From Saccostrea echinata (Eukaryota), in assembly GCF_033153115.1 (NCBI RefSeq), contig NW_026889758.1, forward strand, positions 18,228,001-18,292,000: a stretch of DNA of 64,000 bases, read 5' to 3'. The position numbers were made by a program, and so were the translations under genes. Shown in pieces: positions 46,524 through 60,627 of this stretch (position 1 is its first letter; every line of letters begins with the position of its first letter). Under the pieces are notes generated by a model. That model saw only the letters and a program-made list of their open reading frames with translations, was not told the origin of the DNA and made no database searches.

Positions 46524-46690
46524 TTAAGGCTTATGAGAATAAGCTAAGTTTATGTTGAAAAGAATACCGTAACTTTAACATCTACCAGGTTAGGTTCTGA
46601 TGGTTACATTTAATTTGTTCAACGATTCTGATTGGATGTTATTTATAAACTAGATTCAGTGGCAGAGTGGATTGTAAACAGAAGTCTAAT
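46524..46690 (+). repeat. Ngaro terminal repeat A1
   Basis: Direct repeat of 51713-51879. Confidence 0.93.
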
Positions 46691-46852
46691 ATTTATTGCC
46701 CGTTTTCCACGGTCTTAAAATTCTAATTGTGACTGTGCATTGCGTGTACAGAATTATGTGAGATATGTGAACAATTTTAATACAGAAGTTGTATGTTTCC
46801 GTGATTTATAAACTGTAATCGTAGTTTGGAATTCAGAGACAGTTATCTCACA

Positions 46853-47443
46853 ATGGCGGATGGTAATTCAAGACCGCGCACTCGCCAGCGTCCATTACAA
46901 AATATGTCAAGTCGATGGGACGCTACTAACGTAAACAATTGGACAACTACACAGTTTCAAGAAGAACTTCTAAAATTAAACATTCGTGTCCCTGCTAATA
47001 TTGGAAAGGCGACTCTTAGAAAACTCTACTTGGAAAATGTAAACAGAACCCCCACGGTGAGAGAACGGCGGGAAAATGACTCGTCCCAAAATAGTCATCC
47101 TGATGAGCTTCCTAATTCCTCGACAGAAACACCCATTGTGTCCCAGTCTGAAGAAACTTCCAATATCGGAACATCTACACATACCGAGTTTACCGACCAG
47201 ACCGTCCAACGTGCTCAAACGCATATGAATTCGGGCTCGGAATCCTTGCGTAAAAATTCCAACATGGCCGCCAGTGTAAATAATCAAGTAATCAGCGGTA
47301 TGCTGAATACTATGAACACAATGCAACAAACCGTTATGGGTCTACAACAGACAGTGCTCCGACTGATGTCAGATAAGACGGGAAATACAGGAAATAGCAC
47401 AATGACACGGGTAATTCACTGGACACGGCGTATGCGGCCATGA
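46853..47443 (+). CDS. Ngaro Gag-like ORF, N-terminal part (probably frameshifted from the next ORF near 47400)
   Basis: ATG at 46853. LEM/SAP-like N-terminal helical motif (WTTTQFQEELLKLNIRVPANIGKATLRKLYLEN), a low-complexity linker and a coiled segment. The downstream frame is already open from about 47400 (NDTGNSLDTAYAAMRSQ). Confidence 0.7.
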   Translation: MADGNSRPRTRQRPLQNMSSRWDATNVNNWTTTQFQEELLKLNIRVPANIGKATLRKLYLENVNRTPTVRERRENDSSQNSHPDELPNSSTETPIVSQSEETSNIGTSTHTEFTDQTVQRAQTHMNSGSESLRKNSNMAASVNNQVISGMLNTMNTMQQTVMGLQQTVLRLMSDKTGNTGNSTMTRVIHWTRRMRP

Positions 47444-48255
47444 GGAGCCAGACTGTCCCAGCAACTCAGAATACAGGTGGGTATAGATTACCTCAGACAG
47501 AATTTGGTGTCCCCTCTGAAAACCTAACGCATTTAGACATTCTTGGGGATAAATTCAGACAGAAGATATGGGGGGGGGGGGAAGACGTGAATTTAGCAGT
47601 ATTGCTAATACCCAAATATGAGACAGAAAAGACGAAGAATATCACAATAAACTTGTTAAAATATGAGGATCCTCGACTCCATAAACAATTGACTATATCC
47701 GAATTTATTACTGCATTCGGACGATACAAGAGAGTCATGTGTCAAAAGTACCCTGAAAGGCAAGTTGAACTGGACAGGTACGAGGCTAACATAGCGGATA
47801 TTCATAACGTTTATGGTCAAAAGTTCTATGATTACCATTACCAGTTTTCTGCCAGAGCAGCCACAGCACTAAGAGACCATAATGTTAAGGTGGATTGGTC
47901 AGTTAAGGACTTGAATCTTATGATGATAGTGATGGGAAATGCTCAAGCCAATACCTGTAATACATGTTCATCAACCTTACACATGTCTGCTTTCTGTCCA
48001 AAAATATCTGAAAGTAGAATTCCAGTGATTACTTCATCTCCGTCACAAAACCCGAAGTCATCATCAATGGACAGATATGGACGACCAAGGACCATAATAG
48101 ATGGGAAAGAAGTGTGTAATAACTTTAACGAAAACAAATGCAAAAGACAAAATTGCCAGTTTGAACATCTGTGCACAACATGTCATTCTAAGGACCATGG
48201 ATCCTCATTATGTAAGAATGTTTCCAGAGTCCAGCCTAAGGTTGGAAAAAAGTGA
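47440..48255 (+). CDS. Ngaro Gag-like ORF, C-terminal part with Cys/His zinc fingers
   Basis: CNTCSSTLHMSAFC and CNNFNENKCKRQNCQFEHLCTTCHSKDHGSSLC (CCHC/CCCH-type knuckles), typical of Gag in YR retrotransposons. Confidence 0.82.
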   Translation: MRSQTVPATQNTGGYRLPQTEFGVPSENLTHLDILGDKFRQKIWGGGEDVNLAVLLIPKYETEKTKNITINLLKYEDPRLHKQLTISEFITAFGRYKRVMCQKYPERQVELDRYEANIADIHNVYGQKFYDYHYQFSARAATALRDHNVKVDWSVKDLNLMMIVMGNAQANTCNTCSSTLHMSAFCPKISESRIPVITSSPSQNPKSSSMDRYGRPRTIIDGKEVCNNFNENKCKRQNCQFEHLCTTCHSKDHGSSLCKNVSRVQPKVGKK

Positions 48256-48270
48256 CTAGAAAACAGGACA

Positions 48271-49497
48271 ATGATGACAGATGATCTCCTAACAACGCCT
48301 GTAAGCATTAAAGTTTTAACACATGAACTTTTCCATCATCCTGACAAAGAATTTGCGAAATATTTGTGTGATGGTTTTACTTATGGCTTTGATACTATGA
48401 TTTCTAATGCAGATGCTGATTCAGAAACCTTAGAATGTAGAAATCTTCTGTCGGCTAGAAATCAGCCAGAAATAGTAGATAAATTAGTGAAGACAGAAGT
48501 GGAAAAAGGTTTCGTGGTAGGTCCACTAGAGTCACTTCCATTCCCAAAATACAGAGTAAGCCTAATAGGCGTGGCAATTGGGAAATATTCAGGGAAACCA
48601 AGGCTTATCATGGACTTATCATCCCCTCATGATAACGAGCATCATGCCAGTGTCAATTCCATGATAGATAAAGAAAACTGTTCTCTGTCTTATGTTAAAA
48701 TAGATGACGCCATACGAATTATTCAGACTCTAGGACGTGGGACCACTATGTGCAAAACAGACATTTCCGATGCCTTTAAACTTGTCCCGGTTCTACCCGA
48801 ACAGTGGCATATGTTTTGTTTCAAATGGAGATCACAATATTATTACTATACAAAATTATCATTTGGTTGCAGATCAAGTCCAAAGATATTTGACAATCTT
48901 TCACAAGCAGTGTGCTGGATAGCGTATAACAATTATGGAATCAAATATATTCTACATCTATTAGATGATTTCATCACTTTCGAACATCCTGAAAATGACG
49001 GTGAAACAAACATGAATTTGTTGTATTATATCTTTCAAACTCTCAATATACCAATGGCTCTGCATAAAACCGAAGGACCTACCACGTGCTTAGAGTATTT
49101 AGGCATCATTTTAGACTCACAGTTAATGGAAGCCAGACTCCCAAATGAGAAATTCCAAAGAATAACAGAATTCCTTCACAAATTTCAATCACGCAAATCT
49201 TGTACGAAGAGAGAACTTCTGCAGCTACTGGGCCATTTGAACTTCGCCAGCCGTGTCATCCTCCCAGGAAGGTCTTTTGTTTCCCATCTTATTGCCCTAT
49301 CCACCACCGTTAAACAACTGCATCATTATGTGAAAATAAACGAACAATGTAGGGAAGACATGCAAATGTGGCTGAGTTTCTTAAGCAATTGGAATGGCAT
49401 TAATCTATTTTATAGTATGTCTCAGATTACATCAGAGGAACGAACTAAATCTTTATACAGATGCTTCTGCAACGGTAGAATATGGAGGGTTCTTTAA
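48271..49497 (+). CDS. Ngaro reverse transcriptase
   Basis: RLIMDLS, KTDISDAFKLVPV, LSFGCRSSPKIF, HLLDDF and YLGIILDS motifs of DIRS/Ngaro RT. Confidence 0.92.
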   Translation: MMTDDLLTTPVSIKVLTHELFHHPDKEFAKYLCDGFTYGFDTMISNADADSETLECRNLLSARNQPEIVDKLVKTEVEKGFVVGPLESLPFPKYRVSLIGVAIGKYSGKPRLIMDLSSPHDNEHHASVNSMIDKENCSLSYVKIDDAIRIIQTLGRGTTMCKTDISDAFKLVPVLPEQWHMFCFKWRSQYYYYTKLSFGCRSSPKIFDNLSQAVCWIAYNNYGIKYILHLLDDFITFEHPENDGETNMNLLYYIFQTLNIPMALHKTEGPTTCLEYLGIILDSQLMEARLPNEKFQRITEFLHKFQSRKSCTKRELLQLLGHLNFASRVILPGRSFVSHLIALSTTVKQLHHYVKINEQCREDMQMWLSFLSNWNGINLFYSMSQITSEERTKSLYRCFCNGRIWRVL

Positions 49498-49918
49498 AGG
49501 AAACTGGTTCTCCGAGCCTTGGACAGATGAAGTTAAACAATTATGTGATAGTGATACAGAATTATCAATTGCTTTCTTTGAGTTATATCCCATTGTTGTA
49601 GCTTCCATTCTCTGGGGTCATATGTGGAAGAAACAAAGAATAGTTTTTATGTGTGACAATTCGGCAACGGTAGCAATCTTAAATAACGGAAGATCAAAGT
49701 CTGTACATATTATGCCGTTAATGAGACGATTAACTCTTGTGTCTGCTCAACATAATTTTGTATTCTCTTCAATTCATGTTCCTGGTAAACAAAATACTAT
49801 AGCAGATGCTTTATCACGTTTACAGATTTCGAAGTTTCGCAGTCTGGTACCCAGTGCCCAAGAGCATGCAACCAAAGTACCACCACCCAAAGATGTTTTG
49901 TGGAGCTCGAAGACGTAG
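49394..49918 (+). CDS. Ngaro RNase H domain (separated from RT by a 1-nt frameshift near 49440)
   Basis: LYTDAS, FELYPI, CDNSATV and NTIADALSR motifs. Confidence 0.88.
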   Translation: MALIYFIVCLRLHQRNELNLYTDASATVEYGGFFKGNWFSEPWTDEVKQLCDSDTELSIAFFELYPIVVASILWGHMWKKQRIVFMCDNSATVAILNNGRSKSVHIMPLMRRLTLVSAQHNFVFSSIHVPGKQNTIADALSRLQISKFRSLVPSAQEHATKVPPPKDVLWSSKT

Positions 49919-50871
49919 TACAACAATTATGGACAAATGCCGTAGCACCAAGCACAAGATCCACTTATAGGTCTGCGTTCCATATGTACGTTCAATTTTT
50001 ATTGATGTCATGTGCCATTTCTAGTGCATATACTTCGGACATCCCAGTGACTGAAGACTATTTGATATACTTTGTAGCTCACTGTGTTAGTAGGCTTAAG
50101 CTAAGCTTTTCAACCATTAAGCTGTATTTGTGTGGTATTAAATTTATATGTCTTGAAAGCAACATTGCTTACCCAGATGTCACCAATCTGTCTCGACTTA
50201 AAGCATTGTTAAATGGTGTCAAACGAATGCAGTTACCATCTTGTAAGCTAAGACATCCTATAACTTTTGACATACTGAAAAAAGTTTGTATATATTTTCG
50301 TAGAACAGAAAGTTTTAGAAATTTTATGTTAGAAACTGTATGTACTATAGCATTTTTTGGTTTTTTAAGGTGTGGGGAATTTACCATTAAGGATTCTTTT
50401 GACCCCACAACAAACTTATGTGTTAGTGACCTTAGTGTTCTAGAAAGTTGTGTATTGTTAAATCTTAAGATCTCAAAAACTGATCCTTTTAGAAAAGGAA
50501 TTACAATTAAACTGTTCCCCACAAGCAACATAATATGTCCATTTTCAATATGTTGTAAATATTTAAAAGCACGCTGTTCCTTGCCCTTTTCAGCCAAGCA
50601 ACCATTATTTGTAAATAGCGATGGAAATGCTCTAACAAGAACTGAATTTATTTCTGAACTTAAGCATGCTCTTAAATGTATTGGATGTAATTCAGATGTA
50701 TATAATGGACACTCATTCAGGATAGGGTCAGCAACCACTGCAGCTGCTGTCCATATGGAAGACCATTTAATCAAGGTGTTAGGTAGATGGTCTTCTGATG
50801 CTTATTGTAGATATATTAGAACACCAGAAACTGTTTTACGAGAGGCACAAAAGTCAATGACAACTGTTTAA
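49900..50871 (+). CDS. Tyrosine recombinase (phage-integrase family) of the Ngaro element
   Basis: GFLRCGEF (R), KISKTD (K), GHSFRIGSAT (H-x-x-R) and LGRWSSDAYCRY (W, Y) catalytic set. Intact 323-aa frame. Confidence 0.93.
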   Translation: MELEDVVQQLWTNAVAPSTRSTYRSAFHMYVQFLLMSCAISSAYTSDIPVTEDYLIYFVAHCVSRLKLSFSTIKLYLCGIKFICLESNIAYPDVTNLSRLKALLNGVKRMQLPSCKLRHPITFDILKKVCIYFRRTESFRNFMLETVCTIAFFGFLRCGEFTIKDSFDPTTNLCVSDLSVLESCVLLNLKISKTDPFRKGITIKLFPTSNIICPFSICCKYLKARCSLPFSAKQPLFVNSDGNALTRTEFISELKHALKCIGCNSDVYNGHSFRIGSATTAAAVHMEDHLIKVLGRWSSDAYCRYIRTPETVLREAQKSMTTV

Positions 50872-51082
50872 TACCTTGTCACCTGACACTTATTTTCAGT
50901 TTTAGGTTTAGTTGACCTTTGTCAGATAATTGCATACAATTTTCGTTTTTTCAGCATTAAGAACTTTTATGTTTTATATTAGGATGTACATGTATATCAT
51001 TTCTATTCAGTATTATTAATATTGCATTTTTGGGGGCACTCAGCTTCATTTCGATTGCAACTACATTCACCTGAGTTTTGGC

Positions 51083-52608
51083 CATCATTTAATAATTTTT
51101 TACCATATATATATATTATTAAATTTTAAACCCCCAAAAAATCATGTAACTTGTTTTAAATAGCTTATATTCCGGCTCTTGTTACCTAACTATGAAGTGG
51201 CTTTCATTTCGGCATGCTGAGAGAAATATCTCACTAAATTCATAGAGAGGCTACACCGAGTTTATAAGCATCATCTTCCAGACATTCTCTTCCGGCTCTT
51301 GTATCCTGGAACCAGTCCATCTTTCAGTCTACCACACCGAGTTGAGTACTACGTGCTCTTCCGGATCTTGTCGGTCAAACATGACTGGTCTCCTATGCTG
51401 CTACACCGAGTTGAGTTTTGTCTTGGAAGTTGAACCTCAATCTCAAAGCACACCAGTTTCACCGAGTTGACTGGTACATATATCTGTACCTTTCTTCCGG
51501 CTCTTGGGACTGGTTCCGCTGTTCTGAGGATAGGGTTTTTAACTGATTAAAACTATGAGAAGCTGAGTCTGCCCCTATTTCTGCCAAAGTATATATATGT
51601 ATTTCAATGTTATTTGATGTTTTTGTATTGGAAGTTATTTGTGGAATGTTTAAATGTTAGACTTTGAATAAATGTTTTAACCTACTATACTATTTTATCT
51701 TTTCAACATAAATTAAGGCTTATGAGAATAAGCTAAGTTTATGTTGAAAAGAATACCGTAACTTTAACATCTACCAGGTTAGGTTCTGATAGTTACATTT
51801 AATTTGTTCAACGATTCTGATTGGATGTTACTTATAAACTAGATAAAGTGGCAGAGTGGATTGTAAACAGAAGTCTAATCGCCACCACCCCTACGCATCT
51901 CCATATTTTTCATTTTCATGTAAAATGCTTATTCATATATATTTTCATTCCCAAATTGGGTAGACTCAGCCTTTTATTCATCATTTAATAATTTTTTACC
52001 ATATATATATATTATTAAATTTTAAACCCCCAAAAAATCATGTAACTTGTTTTAAATAGCTTATATTCCGGCTCTTGTTACCTAACTATGAAGTGGCTTT
52101 CATTTCGGCATGCTGAGAGAAATATCTCACTAAATTCATAGAGAGGCTACACCGAGTTTATAAGCATCATCTTCCAGACATTCTCTTCCGGCTCTTGTAT
52201 CCTGGAACCAGTCCATCTTTCAGTCTACCACACCGAGTTGAGTACTACGTGCTCTTCCGGATCTTGTCGGTCAAACATGACTGGTCTCCTATGCTGCTAC
52301 ACCGAGTTGAGTTTTGTCTTGGAAGTTGAACCTCAATCTCAAAGCACACCAGTTTCACCGAGTTGACTGGTACATATATCTGTACCTTTCTTCCGGCTCT
52401 TGGGACTGGTTCCGCTGTTCTGAGGATAGGGTTTTTAACTGATTAAAACTATGAGAAGCTGAGTCTGCCCCTATTTCTGCCAAAGTATATATATGTATTT
52501 CAATGTTATTTGATGTTTTTGTATTGGAAGTTATTTGTGGAATGTTTAAATGTTAGACTTTGAATAAATGTTTTAACCTACTATACTATTTTATCTTTTC
52601 AACATAAA
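51083..52608 (+). repeat. Ngaro 3' repeat block B1-A2-spacer-B2
   Basis: B1 51083-51712, A2 51713-51879, spacer 51880-51978 (starts CGCCACCACCCC), B2 51979-52608. Confidence 0.93.
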
Positions 52609-55891: not shown

Positions 55892-55965
<74 letters not shown>

Positions 55966-57421: not shown

Positions 57422-60400
57422 GGTGTAAAGACAAATAATGACCCCCATAGAATAATGACCGGGGGTCATTTTTCGCCATAGAATAATGACCCCCAGTCAT
57501 TATTCAACGGCGAAAAATGACCCCCGGTCATTACTCGGCGTCGAAAAATGACCCTTTTGCCCGTAGAAAAAGTGTCATCATCCTAAAAATCTGCACACCC
57601 TACGTGACGAAAAATGACCCCCGTAGAATAATGACCCCTTGTGCATTAAAGTTGAAATTTTTAGGGGGCAAAAAAATAAAATAAATCAAGAGACATGTTG
57701 GCCAAAATGCTTACCTGAGCATGTCAGGCATGGCATCGAAAGGGGAAATGGGCATTATAAGAGGCAAAAATGACAAGTTACCTTAGAAAAATCTTTGATG
57801 AACCCCTAAAAAAGTTTATTGATGTAAGGGGGATTTCCTTTTTCTCTACTCTATCAAAAAGTTGAGGGTAGGGCAACCAAACTTGCAATTAACATTTTCA
57901 AGCGAAAAAAAATTAAAAATTACGTTCATGAAAATGGAAGGGGGAGGACACCCCACCCAACCCCTGATTCTATGCGCCTGAATGTTATGTTCACCTTGTC
58001 AACTAAAGTATGAGAGATTTTTTTAACTATACTATATAAAAAAGAGGGGCTGTTTACAAGACTTTAAATGAACTTTTTCAAACTATAAATTGCTAAAATT
58101 TACATTCAGAAAAAGTGGGGGGGGGAGGGTATACCTCCCTCTTCTCTGATTCTTTGTGCCTGAATATTATGTCAACTAGAGTGGAATTCGGATGGAGGTG
58201 AAATAACTTTTCAGAAATCTTTTCAATCTATTTTTAGTTCAGTGTAGGAAAAATAAATTCTTATGGTCACCTTGAAGGTCAATAAAATAGTCTGTATTTA
58301 ATAATAAATTGAAAACATTAATGTACTTCAATATAAACTGTATTGAAATGTTTCCATATTGATGTGACAAATGTATCACTGTTTTAAAGTGCATTTTAAA
58401 AAAAAAAAATATTCCTCTTACATGTATTTATCCTATTCTTAGACGACCATGTTAACAGACTTGAATGTACATTATACTGCATGGGATTCTTCTTTATTGC
58501 TTCTATATATTTGAAAAGAAATTCCCATGGACCACTTTTTAGAAATAAAATTGAATGCACATTATACGATTGTGTACGAGACATGCAGAAATTTTATGTC
58601 CTTCTTATGTTTGCTACGTCTGCTTCATATTTGGACGTTCTTCTGACTATAGACGATAAAGAACAACTAAATTGTCTAACAAACGGGAGGACCTCAACTT
58701 TTTCCATCGTCAACTTTCCTTATTTATGTAGTAATATTCCGCTATCATTTGCATATTATGTTTAAAGGTGCTTAGACACAGATTTGAAGTTAATATTTTC
58801 TCAAGTTTTCTGTATAATATCACGACTTATATATTGCAATAGCATTTCACACGAAAATAAAATTAAAAACTTATTTTATCTGGAAATTATTGGAACTAAA
58901 AATTCCTGGACGCGTTTGATTAACACATCATTGCACTTTCACAAATGTTATCTTTATCCTTAATATTTAAGAGAAGAAGCAATTTTGTTGTGTATTAATG
59001 AAAAATATTACATCTATCATCTAGAAAATTCAAAGTAGAAATGTGCAAAAGCAAACCCCCTCATTAATATCGTCAGCCCGTGCTCAGTATTGTGTACAGA
59101 GTTTAACAAATTGAATACACCCGTGAAACGTAAACTGTTTTTGTAAACAGGGCACGAGCTCTGTTATTGTTAATGTTTACGATTCACCGGGTGTGTTCAA
59201 TTCTTAAAGTCTGCACACACCACTGAGCACGGACTGACAATACTGTGAGTGGGTTTTTCTTTCGAACATTTCTACTCTGAATTTTCTGGATTATAGTTTT
59301 AATATTTTTCATCAATACATAACAAAATTGCCACTTTTCTCAAGTGTTAAGAATAAAAATTAAAATTTGTGAAAGTGCAAGGATGTGTCAATCAAACGCG
59401 TCCAGAAATTTGAAGTTTCAATAACTTCGAGATGAAATAAGATTTTTATTATATTTGAGCATGAAATGCTATAGCAACATATAAGTCATGAAATTATACA
59501 GAAAATTTGAGAAAATATTAACTTCAAATCTGTGTCCAAGCACCTTTAAGTCTACCAACTTATTCGATACCCAAGAGCACGATTAATTTTTAAATCGAGG
59601 CAGGCTACTGACAGATACATGTGAGTTGATGTTACAGGGGTTTCAACAACCTCGTTTAAAGTCAGAATTTCGTAAATTCATTGGTCGTATCAATGACCCT
59701 GTCTACAAATATAACCTATAAATGGGTCAATTAATTTGCCTTTGCTTTTATACTAATTTCGACAACGGATTATCACGTTTACCTGATTTATTCATAGGGC
59801 TTATGACGGATGTGAGGGGGCAACAGGGGATGTTTACTCTTTCGAGGCACCTGATCCCACCTCTGCAATTTTCAGGGGTCCTTTTTTATGCCCTGTTAAC
59901 AGAATTGTTTGTGGATATTTTTAAATCATTACTGTTCATTATCTTCACCTTTTTTCATTAGGAAATATATCCACGGTATGTCGTTCGCATGAGATATTAT
60001 GTCATTTTATTATGTCAAATGATATCATCATTTTTCCTTCACTTTTTAGAAAAGTTAATCGTACTCAAAGCATGCTGAATACTTTGGTAGACATGTTTAC
60101 CACTGAAAAGCCAGAACATCCCGCTTGTCTATTATTTAGCTAGGTATGTCTATATTCGGTCAAATATCCAGATATGAAACAAATGGAAGACAGTCATAAA
60201 GGGAGATTATGTTAAGTGTTATATAACCAATAGTAGCCATTTTGTGATTTTTAATATGTGCTGAGAACACAATAAGCTTAAAAGATAGAAATATGCTGTT
60301 AATGTAGTGCTGTTTTATTGCATTTTAATTGACCGTTCGTCCAGTGTTGGTCAATAAGGGCATGAAGAAGAATTAAACATTGAGATTCAAACTTTGGCAT

Positions 60401-60627
60401 CAATCATTATAAATCATTATAAATTTTGTATCACTTTGTTGGAAAAGGGGTCATTTTTCAACCGGGTTCTGTTTTTTATAGGACGCACATATAAAAAAAA
60501 AATGACTCCTAGGGCTCTTTTTCTACAAAAAATGATTTTTTTTCTACGGCTGGGGGGTCATTTTTTTTTCGTTGAAAAATGACCCCCCGGTCATTATTCT
60601 ATGGGGGTCATTATTCGTCTTTACAGG
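57422..60627. mobile_element. About 3.2-kb non-autonomous DNA element with about 50-bp inverted termini and subterminal AATGACCCC repeats
   Basis: TGTAAAGACAAATAATGACCCCCATAGAATAATGACCGGGGGTCATTTTTC (57424-) is inverted at about 60574-60625. Many AATGACCC/GGGTCATT motifs occur at both ends. Confidence 0.75.
58766..59545. mobile_element. Foldback (whole-element palindrome) TTAA MITE inserted into a Penelope-like fragment
   Basis: TTAA|AGGTGCTTAGACACAGATTTGAAGTTAATATTTTCTCAA ... TTGAGAAAATATTAACTTCAAATCTGTGTCCAAGCACCT|TTAA, with arms of about 370 bp. Penelope coding sequence lies at about 58615-58761 and resumes at about 59550-59950. Confidence 0.85.

Follow-up and report, generated by a model that had tools for sequence, protein, structure and literature searches.

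A predicted 3' RNA domain with a repeated two-part motif in a Ngaro-type retrotransposon of Saccostrea echinata

The packaging signals (Psi) of retroviruses and long terminal repeat (LTR) retrotransposons are clustered stem-loops bound by the zinc-knuckle nucleocapsid. The constitutive transport element (CTE) of the Mason-Pfizer and simian type D retroviruses is a 3' rod of about 160 nt in which two direct repeats pair antiparallel, forming two identical internal loops rotated by 180 degrees; it is bound by NXF1. Reverse transcriptases (RTs) of the non-LTR elements, such as R2 and the stringent-type long interspersed nuclear elements (LINEs), recognise structures in the 3' untranslated region (UTR). 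For the retrotransposons of the DIRS order the priming mechanism is unknown, and no primer or start signal has been determined even for DIRS-1, the best studied of them, in which an internal complementary region and a 3' hairpin are required for the synthesis of complementary DNA (cDNA) or at a later stage (PMC7192593). The Ngaro elements of this order carry split direct repeats, which in the published scheme are placed around the open reading frames (ORFs) as A1-[ORFs]-B1A2B2 (PMC8547959, PMC9210276). The domain described here, of about 545 bases, follows the last gene of a complete Ngaro-type retrotransposon of Saccostrea echinata and belongs to the 3' non-coding part of that element; it is found within a stretch of 64,000 nucleotides (contig NW_026889758.1, positions 18,228,001 to 18,292,000 of the forward strand) referred to below as the window, whose numbering is used throughout. 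A preliminary description of this DNA, made from the letters alone, had proposed at 51032-51575 an array of RNA stem-loops with constant bases and variable tops.

The explanation favoured here, with moderate confidence, is that of a cis-acting sense-strand RNA domain with repeated protein-binding modules, located at 51032-51576 and present in a second copy at 51958-52472. The folded domain probably functions as an RNA signal in the copying or packaging of the element, since the helix that closes it recurs with matching changes on both sides in related lineages. What is shown is the sequence pattern, together with its predicted folding and conservation, the compensatory changes, and a bias of wobble pairs towards one strand; from these the making of the RNA, its binding protein and its function are inferred.

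The two-part motif and the predicted fold

Motifs were counted by exact scans of the whole window, with expectations derived from dinucleotide shuffles. The 5' half-motif TTCCGGNTCTTG (TTCCGG(C/A)TCTTG) is found at 51170, 51290, 51359 and 51495, and the 3' half-motif CACCGAGTT at 51254, 51335, 51404 and 51460, exactly where the preliminary description had placed them. Each is present in eight copies, four in the B1 repeat and four in B2, all on the + strand, against expected numbers of 0.00 for TTCCGGNTCTTG and 0.18 for CACCGAGTT. The duplication of the array in B2 was also correctly recognised, B1 and B2 being identical over 630 nt with four motif pairs each. The description of constant and variable parts was a fair one: the motifs are exact, and the segments between them are mutually unrelated (p>0.2 against shuffles in nine of ten pairs, by local alignment). 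These segments, called tops below, have no matches in the genome beyond copies of these elements. Tops 2, 3 and 4 are each exactly 33 nt long, which, together with a unit length of about 69 nt, points to an origin by an old 69-nt duplication.

A simple or decaying minisatellite was also considered and rejected. Tandem Repeats Finder (TRF) detected no tandem repeat in the array even at a score of 30, the tops are unrelated, and the motifs are exact and kept across lineages.

All structures given here are predictions, based on minimum free energy (MFE) and centroid folds and on ensemble pair probabilities, with shuffled sequences providing the z-scores. The sense strand of 51032-51600 folds at -160.4 kcal/mol with a z of -5.3, against -2.6 for the antisense strand; a second shuffle set gave -7.6 and -2.8, respectively, and the B2 version of the domain has a z of -7.1. 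The parts of the fold are given below; fam2 is a related family in the same genome, introduced in the next section.

51031..51047, + strand: B1-type 5' arm of the closing helix (UGGGGGCACUCAGCUUC), preceding the B repeat; partner 51559-51576 in both MFE and centroid folds, probability 1.0; the word is kept in other lineages
51076..51083, + strand: box b (UUUUGGCC), where B1/B2 identity begins; local pairing with CCAAAA at 51134-39
51087..51141, + strand: A/U-rich hairpin followed by box c (CCCCCAAAAAA, 51131-41), from MFE helices; box c recurs in other lineages
51163..51269, + strand: rod I, 5'm1 (51170-81) with 3'm1 (51254-62); z -3.3; base helix and helix above the module compensatory in fam2
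51271..51433, + strand: rod II, units 2 and 3 antiparallel, outer pair 5'm2 (51290-301)/3'm3 (51404-12), apical pair 3'm2 (51335-43)/5'm3 (51359-70); z -2.9; pair probabilities 0.97-1.0
51434..51536, + strand: rod III, inverted module 3'm4 (51460-68)/5'm5 (51495-506) with an apical GGUACA/UGUACC hairpin; z -3.3; one-sided and compensatory changes
51559..51576, + strand: 3' arm of the closing helix (GAAGCUGAGUcuGCCCCU), from MFE pairing
51582..51589, + strand: box e (UGCCAAAG), conserved 3' of the 3' arm and complementary to box b, read in the sequences
51958..51971, + strand: B2-type 5' arm of the closing helix (GGGUAGACUCAGCC), located in the spacer between A2 and B2, from folding of the B2 version

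The closing helix of 16 bp (6+10 bp; 51032-47 with 51559-76, pair probability 1.0) is predicted to enclose a UUUUGG/CCAAAA hairpin and the three rods. Its 5' arm precedes the B repeat, and the array as originally delimited is thus inside B only in part: 51032-51075 lie upstream of it and the remainder within. Two distinct 5' arms, one before B1 and the other before B2, pair with one and the same 3' arm, both in the family of the element and in fam2. The B2-type word GGGTAGACTCAGCC in the spacer pairs with the common 3' arm even better than the B1-type arm (z -7.1), and in the spacer arm of fam2, GGGUAGAUUCAGCC, a C-to-U change yields a U.G pair.

The module, TTCCGGCTCTTG paired with CACCGAGTT, is present in every rod between helices of differing sequence, in the order helix, UU/UU loop, C-G, bulged A, CGG/CCG, CUCU bulge, UGU/ACA, helix; in all there are four modules on three rods. 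The units had been taken for serial local stem-loops. This holds for unit 1, which forms rod I, and fails for units 2 and 3, whose local hairpins have an ensemble probability of 0.0 against 0.97-1.0 for pairing between the units (5'm2:3'm3 and 3'm2:5'm3); the inter-unit fold reaches -34.0 kcal/mol, the local hairpins -23.6 kcal/mol. Rod II has ACCAGUC/GACUGGU as its middle helix and GAGUAC/GUGCUC at its tip. What had been listed as separate units 4 and 5 together form a single inverted module, in which the 3' half at 51460 pairs with the 5' half at 51495, and the stretch at 51421, read earlier as a partial motif, is the 3' strand of the helix CUUCCAGACA/UGUCUUGGAAG. It was correctly noticed that GGAACCAGTCC (51308-18) and GGACTGGTTCC (51507-17) are exact reverse complements and that GACTGGT is present at 51383 and again at 51469. 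The kissing loops built on this complementarity did not survive, as the mutual complementarity of the tops is that of two strands of one rod; the 11-nt match has a pair probability of 0.0 and is absent from the relatives L006 (81% identical) and fam2 (69% identical in the tyrosine recombinase, YR).

It is also worth noting that UUUUGGCC (51076-51083) has alternative partners, either the nearby CCCCCAAAAAA (51131-51141) or UGCCAAAG (51582-51589), just outside the closing helix, and that the 5' arm UUUUUGGGGG can likewise pair with CCCCCAAAAA; these words are conserved in several lineages. A conformational switch or a pseudoknot would be possible with such pairings.

Conservation of the domain in related lineages

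The relatives found in the S. echinata genome comprise near-identical copies of the element, the single degenerate relative L006 and the multi-copy family fam2. The exact motif-pair pattern has 16 matches in the whole genome, all of them in the family of the element and in fam2, and none in the control. Between these two families 64 of 65 motif columns are identical, against 257 of 400 elsewhere (Fisher p 1.8e-10), which points to motifs under constraint (purifying selection) and not decaying; together with the empty TRF result at score 30, this speaks against the decaying simple tandem duplication that the preliminary description had named as its counter-case. The closing helix, rod I, rod III and a rod II with one module are retained in fam2, which lacks exactly 3'm2 and 5'm3. 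The top of rod I is unalignable between the element and fam2, yet it folds in both (z -3.3 and -4.5), and the homologues of rod III have z-scores of -3.25 in fam2 and -5.0 in L006. Overall, the rods have z-scores from -2.9 to -5.0 in the two intact lineages and one rod of L006, rod I of the latter reaching only -1.45, and the sense strand has the better z-score in all eight rod comparisons. The consensus fold of the three lineages contains 86 pairs, seven of them with compensatory changes; its alifold energy of -61.2 is better than that of each of 100 column shuffles (-32.6 +/- 5.1; z -5.6).

The closing helix was sought farther afield, in the regions downstream of other recombinase genes of the S. 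echinata genome (YR identity 40-51%) and of metagenome contigs (32-47%). The genome sample consisted of 20 stretches, about 20 further YR lineages of the genome being outside it. A helix of the form UUGGGG-X / X'-CCCCAA, spanning about 140-890 nt, is present at the equivalent place in 24 lineage representatives (YR 32-100%). X differs from lineage to lineage (CUCAGCUUC, CUCAGCUAUUAUA, CUCAGUCACUCAU, AUUCACUCACA, UUAUGCAGCUGC, AUUCUCA) and X' is complementary to it in every case. Random 24-mers from the same regions reach the observed helix energy in about 2.5% of trials, as tallied over the representatives. In 22 of the 24 lineages the closing helix has the greater stability on the sense strand, and G.U pairs number 41 on the sense and 8 on the antisense strand, a bias somewhat inflated by the ascertainment of these helices on the sense strand. 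The compensatory changes that were looked for in related families are seen in the closing helix (24 lineages), the base of rod I and parts of rod III, and are missing from the fine structure of the tops. The earlier proposal of a structured sense-strand cis element is supported by the z-scores of -5.3 and -7.1, the consensus z of -5.6, the motif conservation and the closing helix.

Other words belong to the same frame. The 5' word TTTTGGGG(C)nCTCAG stands 29 nt upstream of the B repeat, and UUUUGGSC at the start of B, ACCCCAAAA, and YGCCAAAG 3' of the 3' arm recur as well. Judged from this distribution, the frame is much older than the two-part motif. In the element and in fam2 the B repeat begins inside a conserved frame word, which suggests that template switching or the loading of the RT might involve the frame.

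The repeated hairpins, placed within the frame or next to it, are peculiar to each lineage. Whole-domain folds have z-scores from -5.5 to -9.2 in six lineages, in two of which the antisense strand scores better still. The arrays are as follows:

L067 family: six copies of AGGCCAUCGGCCU
L069: two paralogous units of three hairpins each, the stem of one arm being replaced yet still paired
L058: GUUUGAcaccUCAAAC, twice
Metagenome contig L107: four copies of CACCAUguaCCCAaucgUGGGGUGGUG
L076: six copies of a 35-nt unit
L060 family: about 14 UGUGCuuacGCACA and GUACuuacGUAC hairpins, beside the frame and not inside it

In L069, the units are located 543-700 downstream of the YR gene (G000:C25, ~13069700); each is composed of a closing stem and three hairpins in a cloverleaf-like arrangement, and one arm is wholly different in sequence and equal in shape. 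In L060-L063, the approximately 14 small hairpins, 380-860 downstream of the YR gene and upstream of the frame, have a constant UUAC loop on stems UGUGC/GCACA and GUAC/GUAC.

Proposed function and alternative explanations

In the mechanism proposed for the cis-acting RNA domain, the sense-strand RNA would carry it between the stop codon of the recombinase gene and the poly(A) signal. The long closing helix, conserved across the Ngaro clade, would insulate the domain, and inside it the neighbouring direct-repeat units of about 69 nt would pair into the three rods, each displaying the common internal-loop module flanked by helices of free sequence. Most likely, one protein would bind repeatedly, at each of the four identical modules; the zinc-finger Gag encoded by ORF2 is the best candidate and would select the RNA for packaging or for assembly of the ribonucleoprotein (RNP); the RT or a host export factor could bind instead. 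ORF2 (47440-48255) has no Pfam match; its two CCHC motifs and single CCCH zinc finger, close to the C-terminus, are what one would expect of a Gag that binds nucleic acids, and they make Gag binding plausible and the element's own Gag the first candidate partner. Together with the repeated modules, these zinc fingers are circumstantial evidence of a packaging signal. The frame, that is the closing helix with the UUUUGGCC boundary word, would probably serve reverse transcription or template switching at the B boundary. A broader proposal can be put forward only tentatively: the clade-wide 3' RNA frame (UUGGGG...CCCCAA and the boundary words) might hold a fast-evolving hairpin cassette that acts as a lineage-specific address label, read by the lineage's own Gag, and decides which autonomous lineage packages and copies a given RNA, those of gene-less non-autonomous copies and solo A-spacer-B units included.

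Several observations weigh against the RNA-domain explanation. The register of the module is contested: in rod I the CGG/CCG pairing has a probability of 0.86 and GGCUC/GAGUU one of 0.135, and RNAalifold favours GGCUC/GAGUU for rod II. The preliminary description had the halves pairing as GGCUC/GAGUU; they do pair, in a register that is minor in rod I and preferred by RNAalifold in rod II. The structure conservation index (SCI) of the consensus fold is only 0.42. Examined column by column, the pairs of the element's MFE fold show covariation on fam2 and L006 no better than slid controls; on fam2 only 19 of 59 changed pairs were kept. Because of this failed test and the low SCI, conservation is claimed for the core only (closing helix, rod bases, modules and rod III) and not for the fine structure of the tops. 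The motif is carried by only three alignable lineages and is missing at YR identities of 51% or less. In L067 and L093 the better fold is that of the antisense strand, the strand bias of the closing helices is inflated as stated above, and invariant motifs fit recognition as DNA equally well.

In one alternative, only the frame (closing helix and boundary words) would be functional, the array being a tolerated minisatellite-like expansion of units prone to form hairpins, itself functionless and produced by RT slippage or unequal exchange. The content, length (~150-600 nt) and motif of the array are wholly different between lineages, the large array of the L060 family is outside the frame, and fam2 has one module fewer; in addition, tops 2-4 are all 33 nt, as expected from a 69-nt duplication, and the fine structure is not kept column by column. 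Such an expansion is nevertheless rather unlikely to be the whole explanation, considering that the half-motifs are identical in 64 of 65 columns while their surroundings are 64% identical between lineages, that within the element the motifs are exact and the tops randomised, and that every rod beats its shuffles in both intact lineages.

The motifs might also act in double-stranded DNA, either as accessory sites at which the tyrosine recombinase or a host factor binds, comparable to the arm sites in phage att regions and close to the B-A junction where recombination is expected, or as enhancer-like repeats. That their sequences are invariant and do not covary, that a palindromic candidate core site is located 140-540 bp downstream, at the B1-A2 junction, and that lineage-specific repeat arrays are typical of protein-DNA recognition would all agree with this. 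It is nonetheless improbable: the half-motifs are mutually complementary and always opposite each other in predicted helices with pairing flanks, all motif copies are on one strand, wobble pairs in the closing helices number 41 on the sense strand and 8 on the antisense, and the rods fold better on the sense strand in eight of eight comparisons.

A role of the structure in minus-strand cDNA or plus-strand single-stranded DNA, for example in second-strand priming or circle formation, and not in RNA, would be in line with the amplification of DIRS-1 via single-stranded cDNA (PMC7192593) and with the better antisense folds of L067 and L093. The sense strand folds better in the element, fam2, L058 and L069, however, and G.U pairs are found on the sense strand, whereas G.T is weak in DNA, which leaves this role very improbable. 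As for a ribozyme, a kissing-loop dimerisation device or a scaffold for variable guide-like sequences, which the exact 11-nt complementarity 51308-18 / 51507-17 and the differing tops might evoke, it is hardly credible, as that match has a probability of 0.0 and is not kept in L006 or fam2, the tops match only copies of these elements in the genome, and a search of Rfam 15 yielded no ribozyme or other family, its sole match at E<=1 being a chance microRNA-like hairpin at the B-A junction (mir-5444, E 0.67, 22 bits against a gathering score of 90).

The host element and known retroelement RNA signals

The split direct repeats of a Ngaro-type element of the DIRS order (A1, B1, A2 and B2) and its ORFs are all located in the window:

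46524..46690, + strand: A1 repeat; four mismatches in 167 nt against A2 (51713-51879)
46826..50871, + strand: coding region with ORF1, the zinc-finger ORF2 (Gag-like), and the RT, RNase H-like and tyrosine recombinase ORFs (ORF list, Pfam, YR relatives)
51083..51712, + strand: B1 repeat, 100% identical to 51979-52608
51667..51672, + strand: AATAAA, a putative polyadenylation signal 40 nt before the end of B, read in the sequence
51699..51751, + strand: palindrome spanning the B1-A2 junction, with 14-nt arms and an inner 6-nt inverted repeat, read in the sequence; the arms covary in fam2
51713..51879, + strand: A2 repeat, matching A1
51979..52608, + strand: B2 repeat, recognised by identity to B1, containing the entire array once more (motifs at +896) and a 3' arm at 52455-52472

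The RT ORF matches Pfam RVT_1 at E 3e-9 and, weakly, RVT_3. The last ORF has no Pfam match of its own; it has 1351 relatives, several of which carry PF00589 or are named tyrosine recombinases, and relatives in Crassostrea, Pecten, Mizuhopecten and Argopecten share 56-67% YR identity. By these Pfam matches and YR relatives the element combines RT/RNase H with a tyrosine recombinase in place of a DDE integrase, as a Ngaro-type element does; its recombinase ORF is 98% identical to an annotated S. echinata protein. A spacer of about 99 nt between A2 and B2 deviates from the textbook Ngaro scheme. Directly 3' of A2 the word CGCCACCACCCC (window 51880-51891; L027 ~2266-2277) is shared by the family of the element and fam2, the rest of the spacer being different.

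A1 and A2 differ at 4 of 167 positions, yet over 630 nt B1 and B2 show no difference. With regeneration of both pairs at insertion such a contrast would be surprising; it suggests conversion between nearby B copies. The arms of the B1-A2 palindrome, CTTTTCAACATAAA and TTTATGTTGAAAAG, enclose GCTTAT/ATAAGC, and in fam2 both are changed together (CTTTCCAAC and GTTGGAAAG); the palindrome is a candidate core site of the recombinase or a candidate RNA hairpin. One B copy (L004 / L023; G000:C2, ~21470517-21471453) that has the B2-type 5' arm (GGGTAGACTCAGCC) and lacks a neighbouring recombinase gene may be a solo A-spacer-B unit. Two other features of the window are not Ngaro-related: palindromic 31-nt repeats (CCCCCGGTCATTATTC...) at 57424-57554 and 60584-60625, in inverted pairs 3 kb apart, and a (TA)33 microsatellite at 55895-55960.

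Hairpins, stem-loops or secondary structure of these regions were not described in the Ngaro literature searched, to which Goodwin & Poulter 2004 and Poulter & Goodwin 2005 did not belong. A bounded, conserved domain with modules provides concrete targets for the question of how tyrosine-recombinase retrotransposons select, prime and copy their RNA. With its help, non-autonomous Ngaro derivatives could be recognised and the autonomous lineage that mobilises them predicted.

Like Psi, the domain is a non-coding, by prediction multi-hairpin RNA of a retroelement that encodes a zinc-finger Gag, with repeated short motifs and lineage-specific sequence. Unlike Psi, which is part of the 5' leader, it belongs to the 3' region, where it occurs twice, in B1 and in B2, and a conserved long-range helix is predicted to enclose it. 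The predicted rod II (51271-51433) has the geometry of the type D CTE, although in fam2 it carries only one module; the Ngaro domain differs in bearing four modules on three rods, and the likeness is one of predicted geometry, sequence similarity having been neither sought nor seen. With the 3' UTRs of R2 and LINEs it shares a structured 3' terminal RNA domain in which shape is kept over sequence and which could load the RT, whereas Ngaro replication uses split direct repeats and a tyrosine recombinase. The internal complementary region and 3' hairpin of DIRS-1 (PMC7192593) are likewise non-coding, complementarity-dependent cis sequences of a tyrosine-recombinase retrotransposon; in DIRS-1, however, the internal complementary region is complementary to the termini of the element, while the complementarity of the Ngaro element is contained within one 3' domain and encloses a repeat array.

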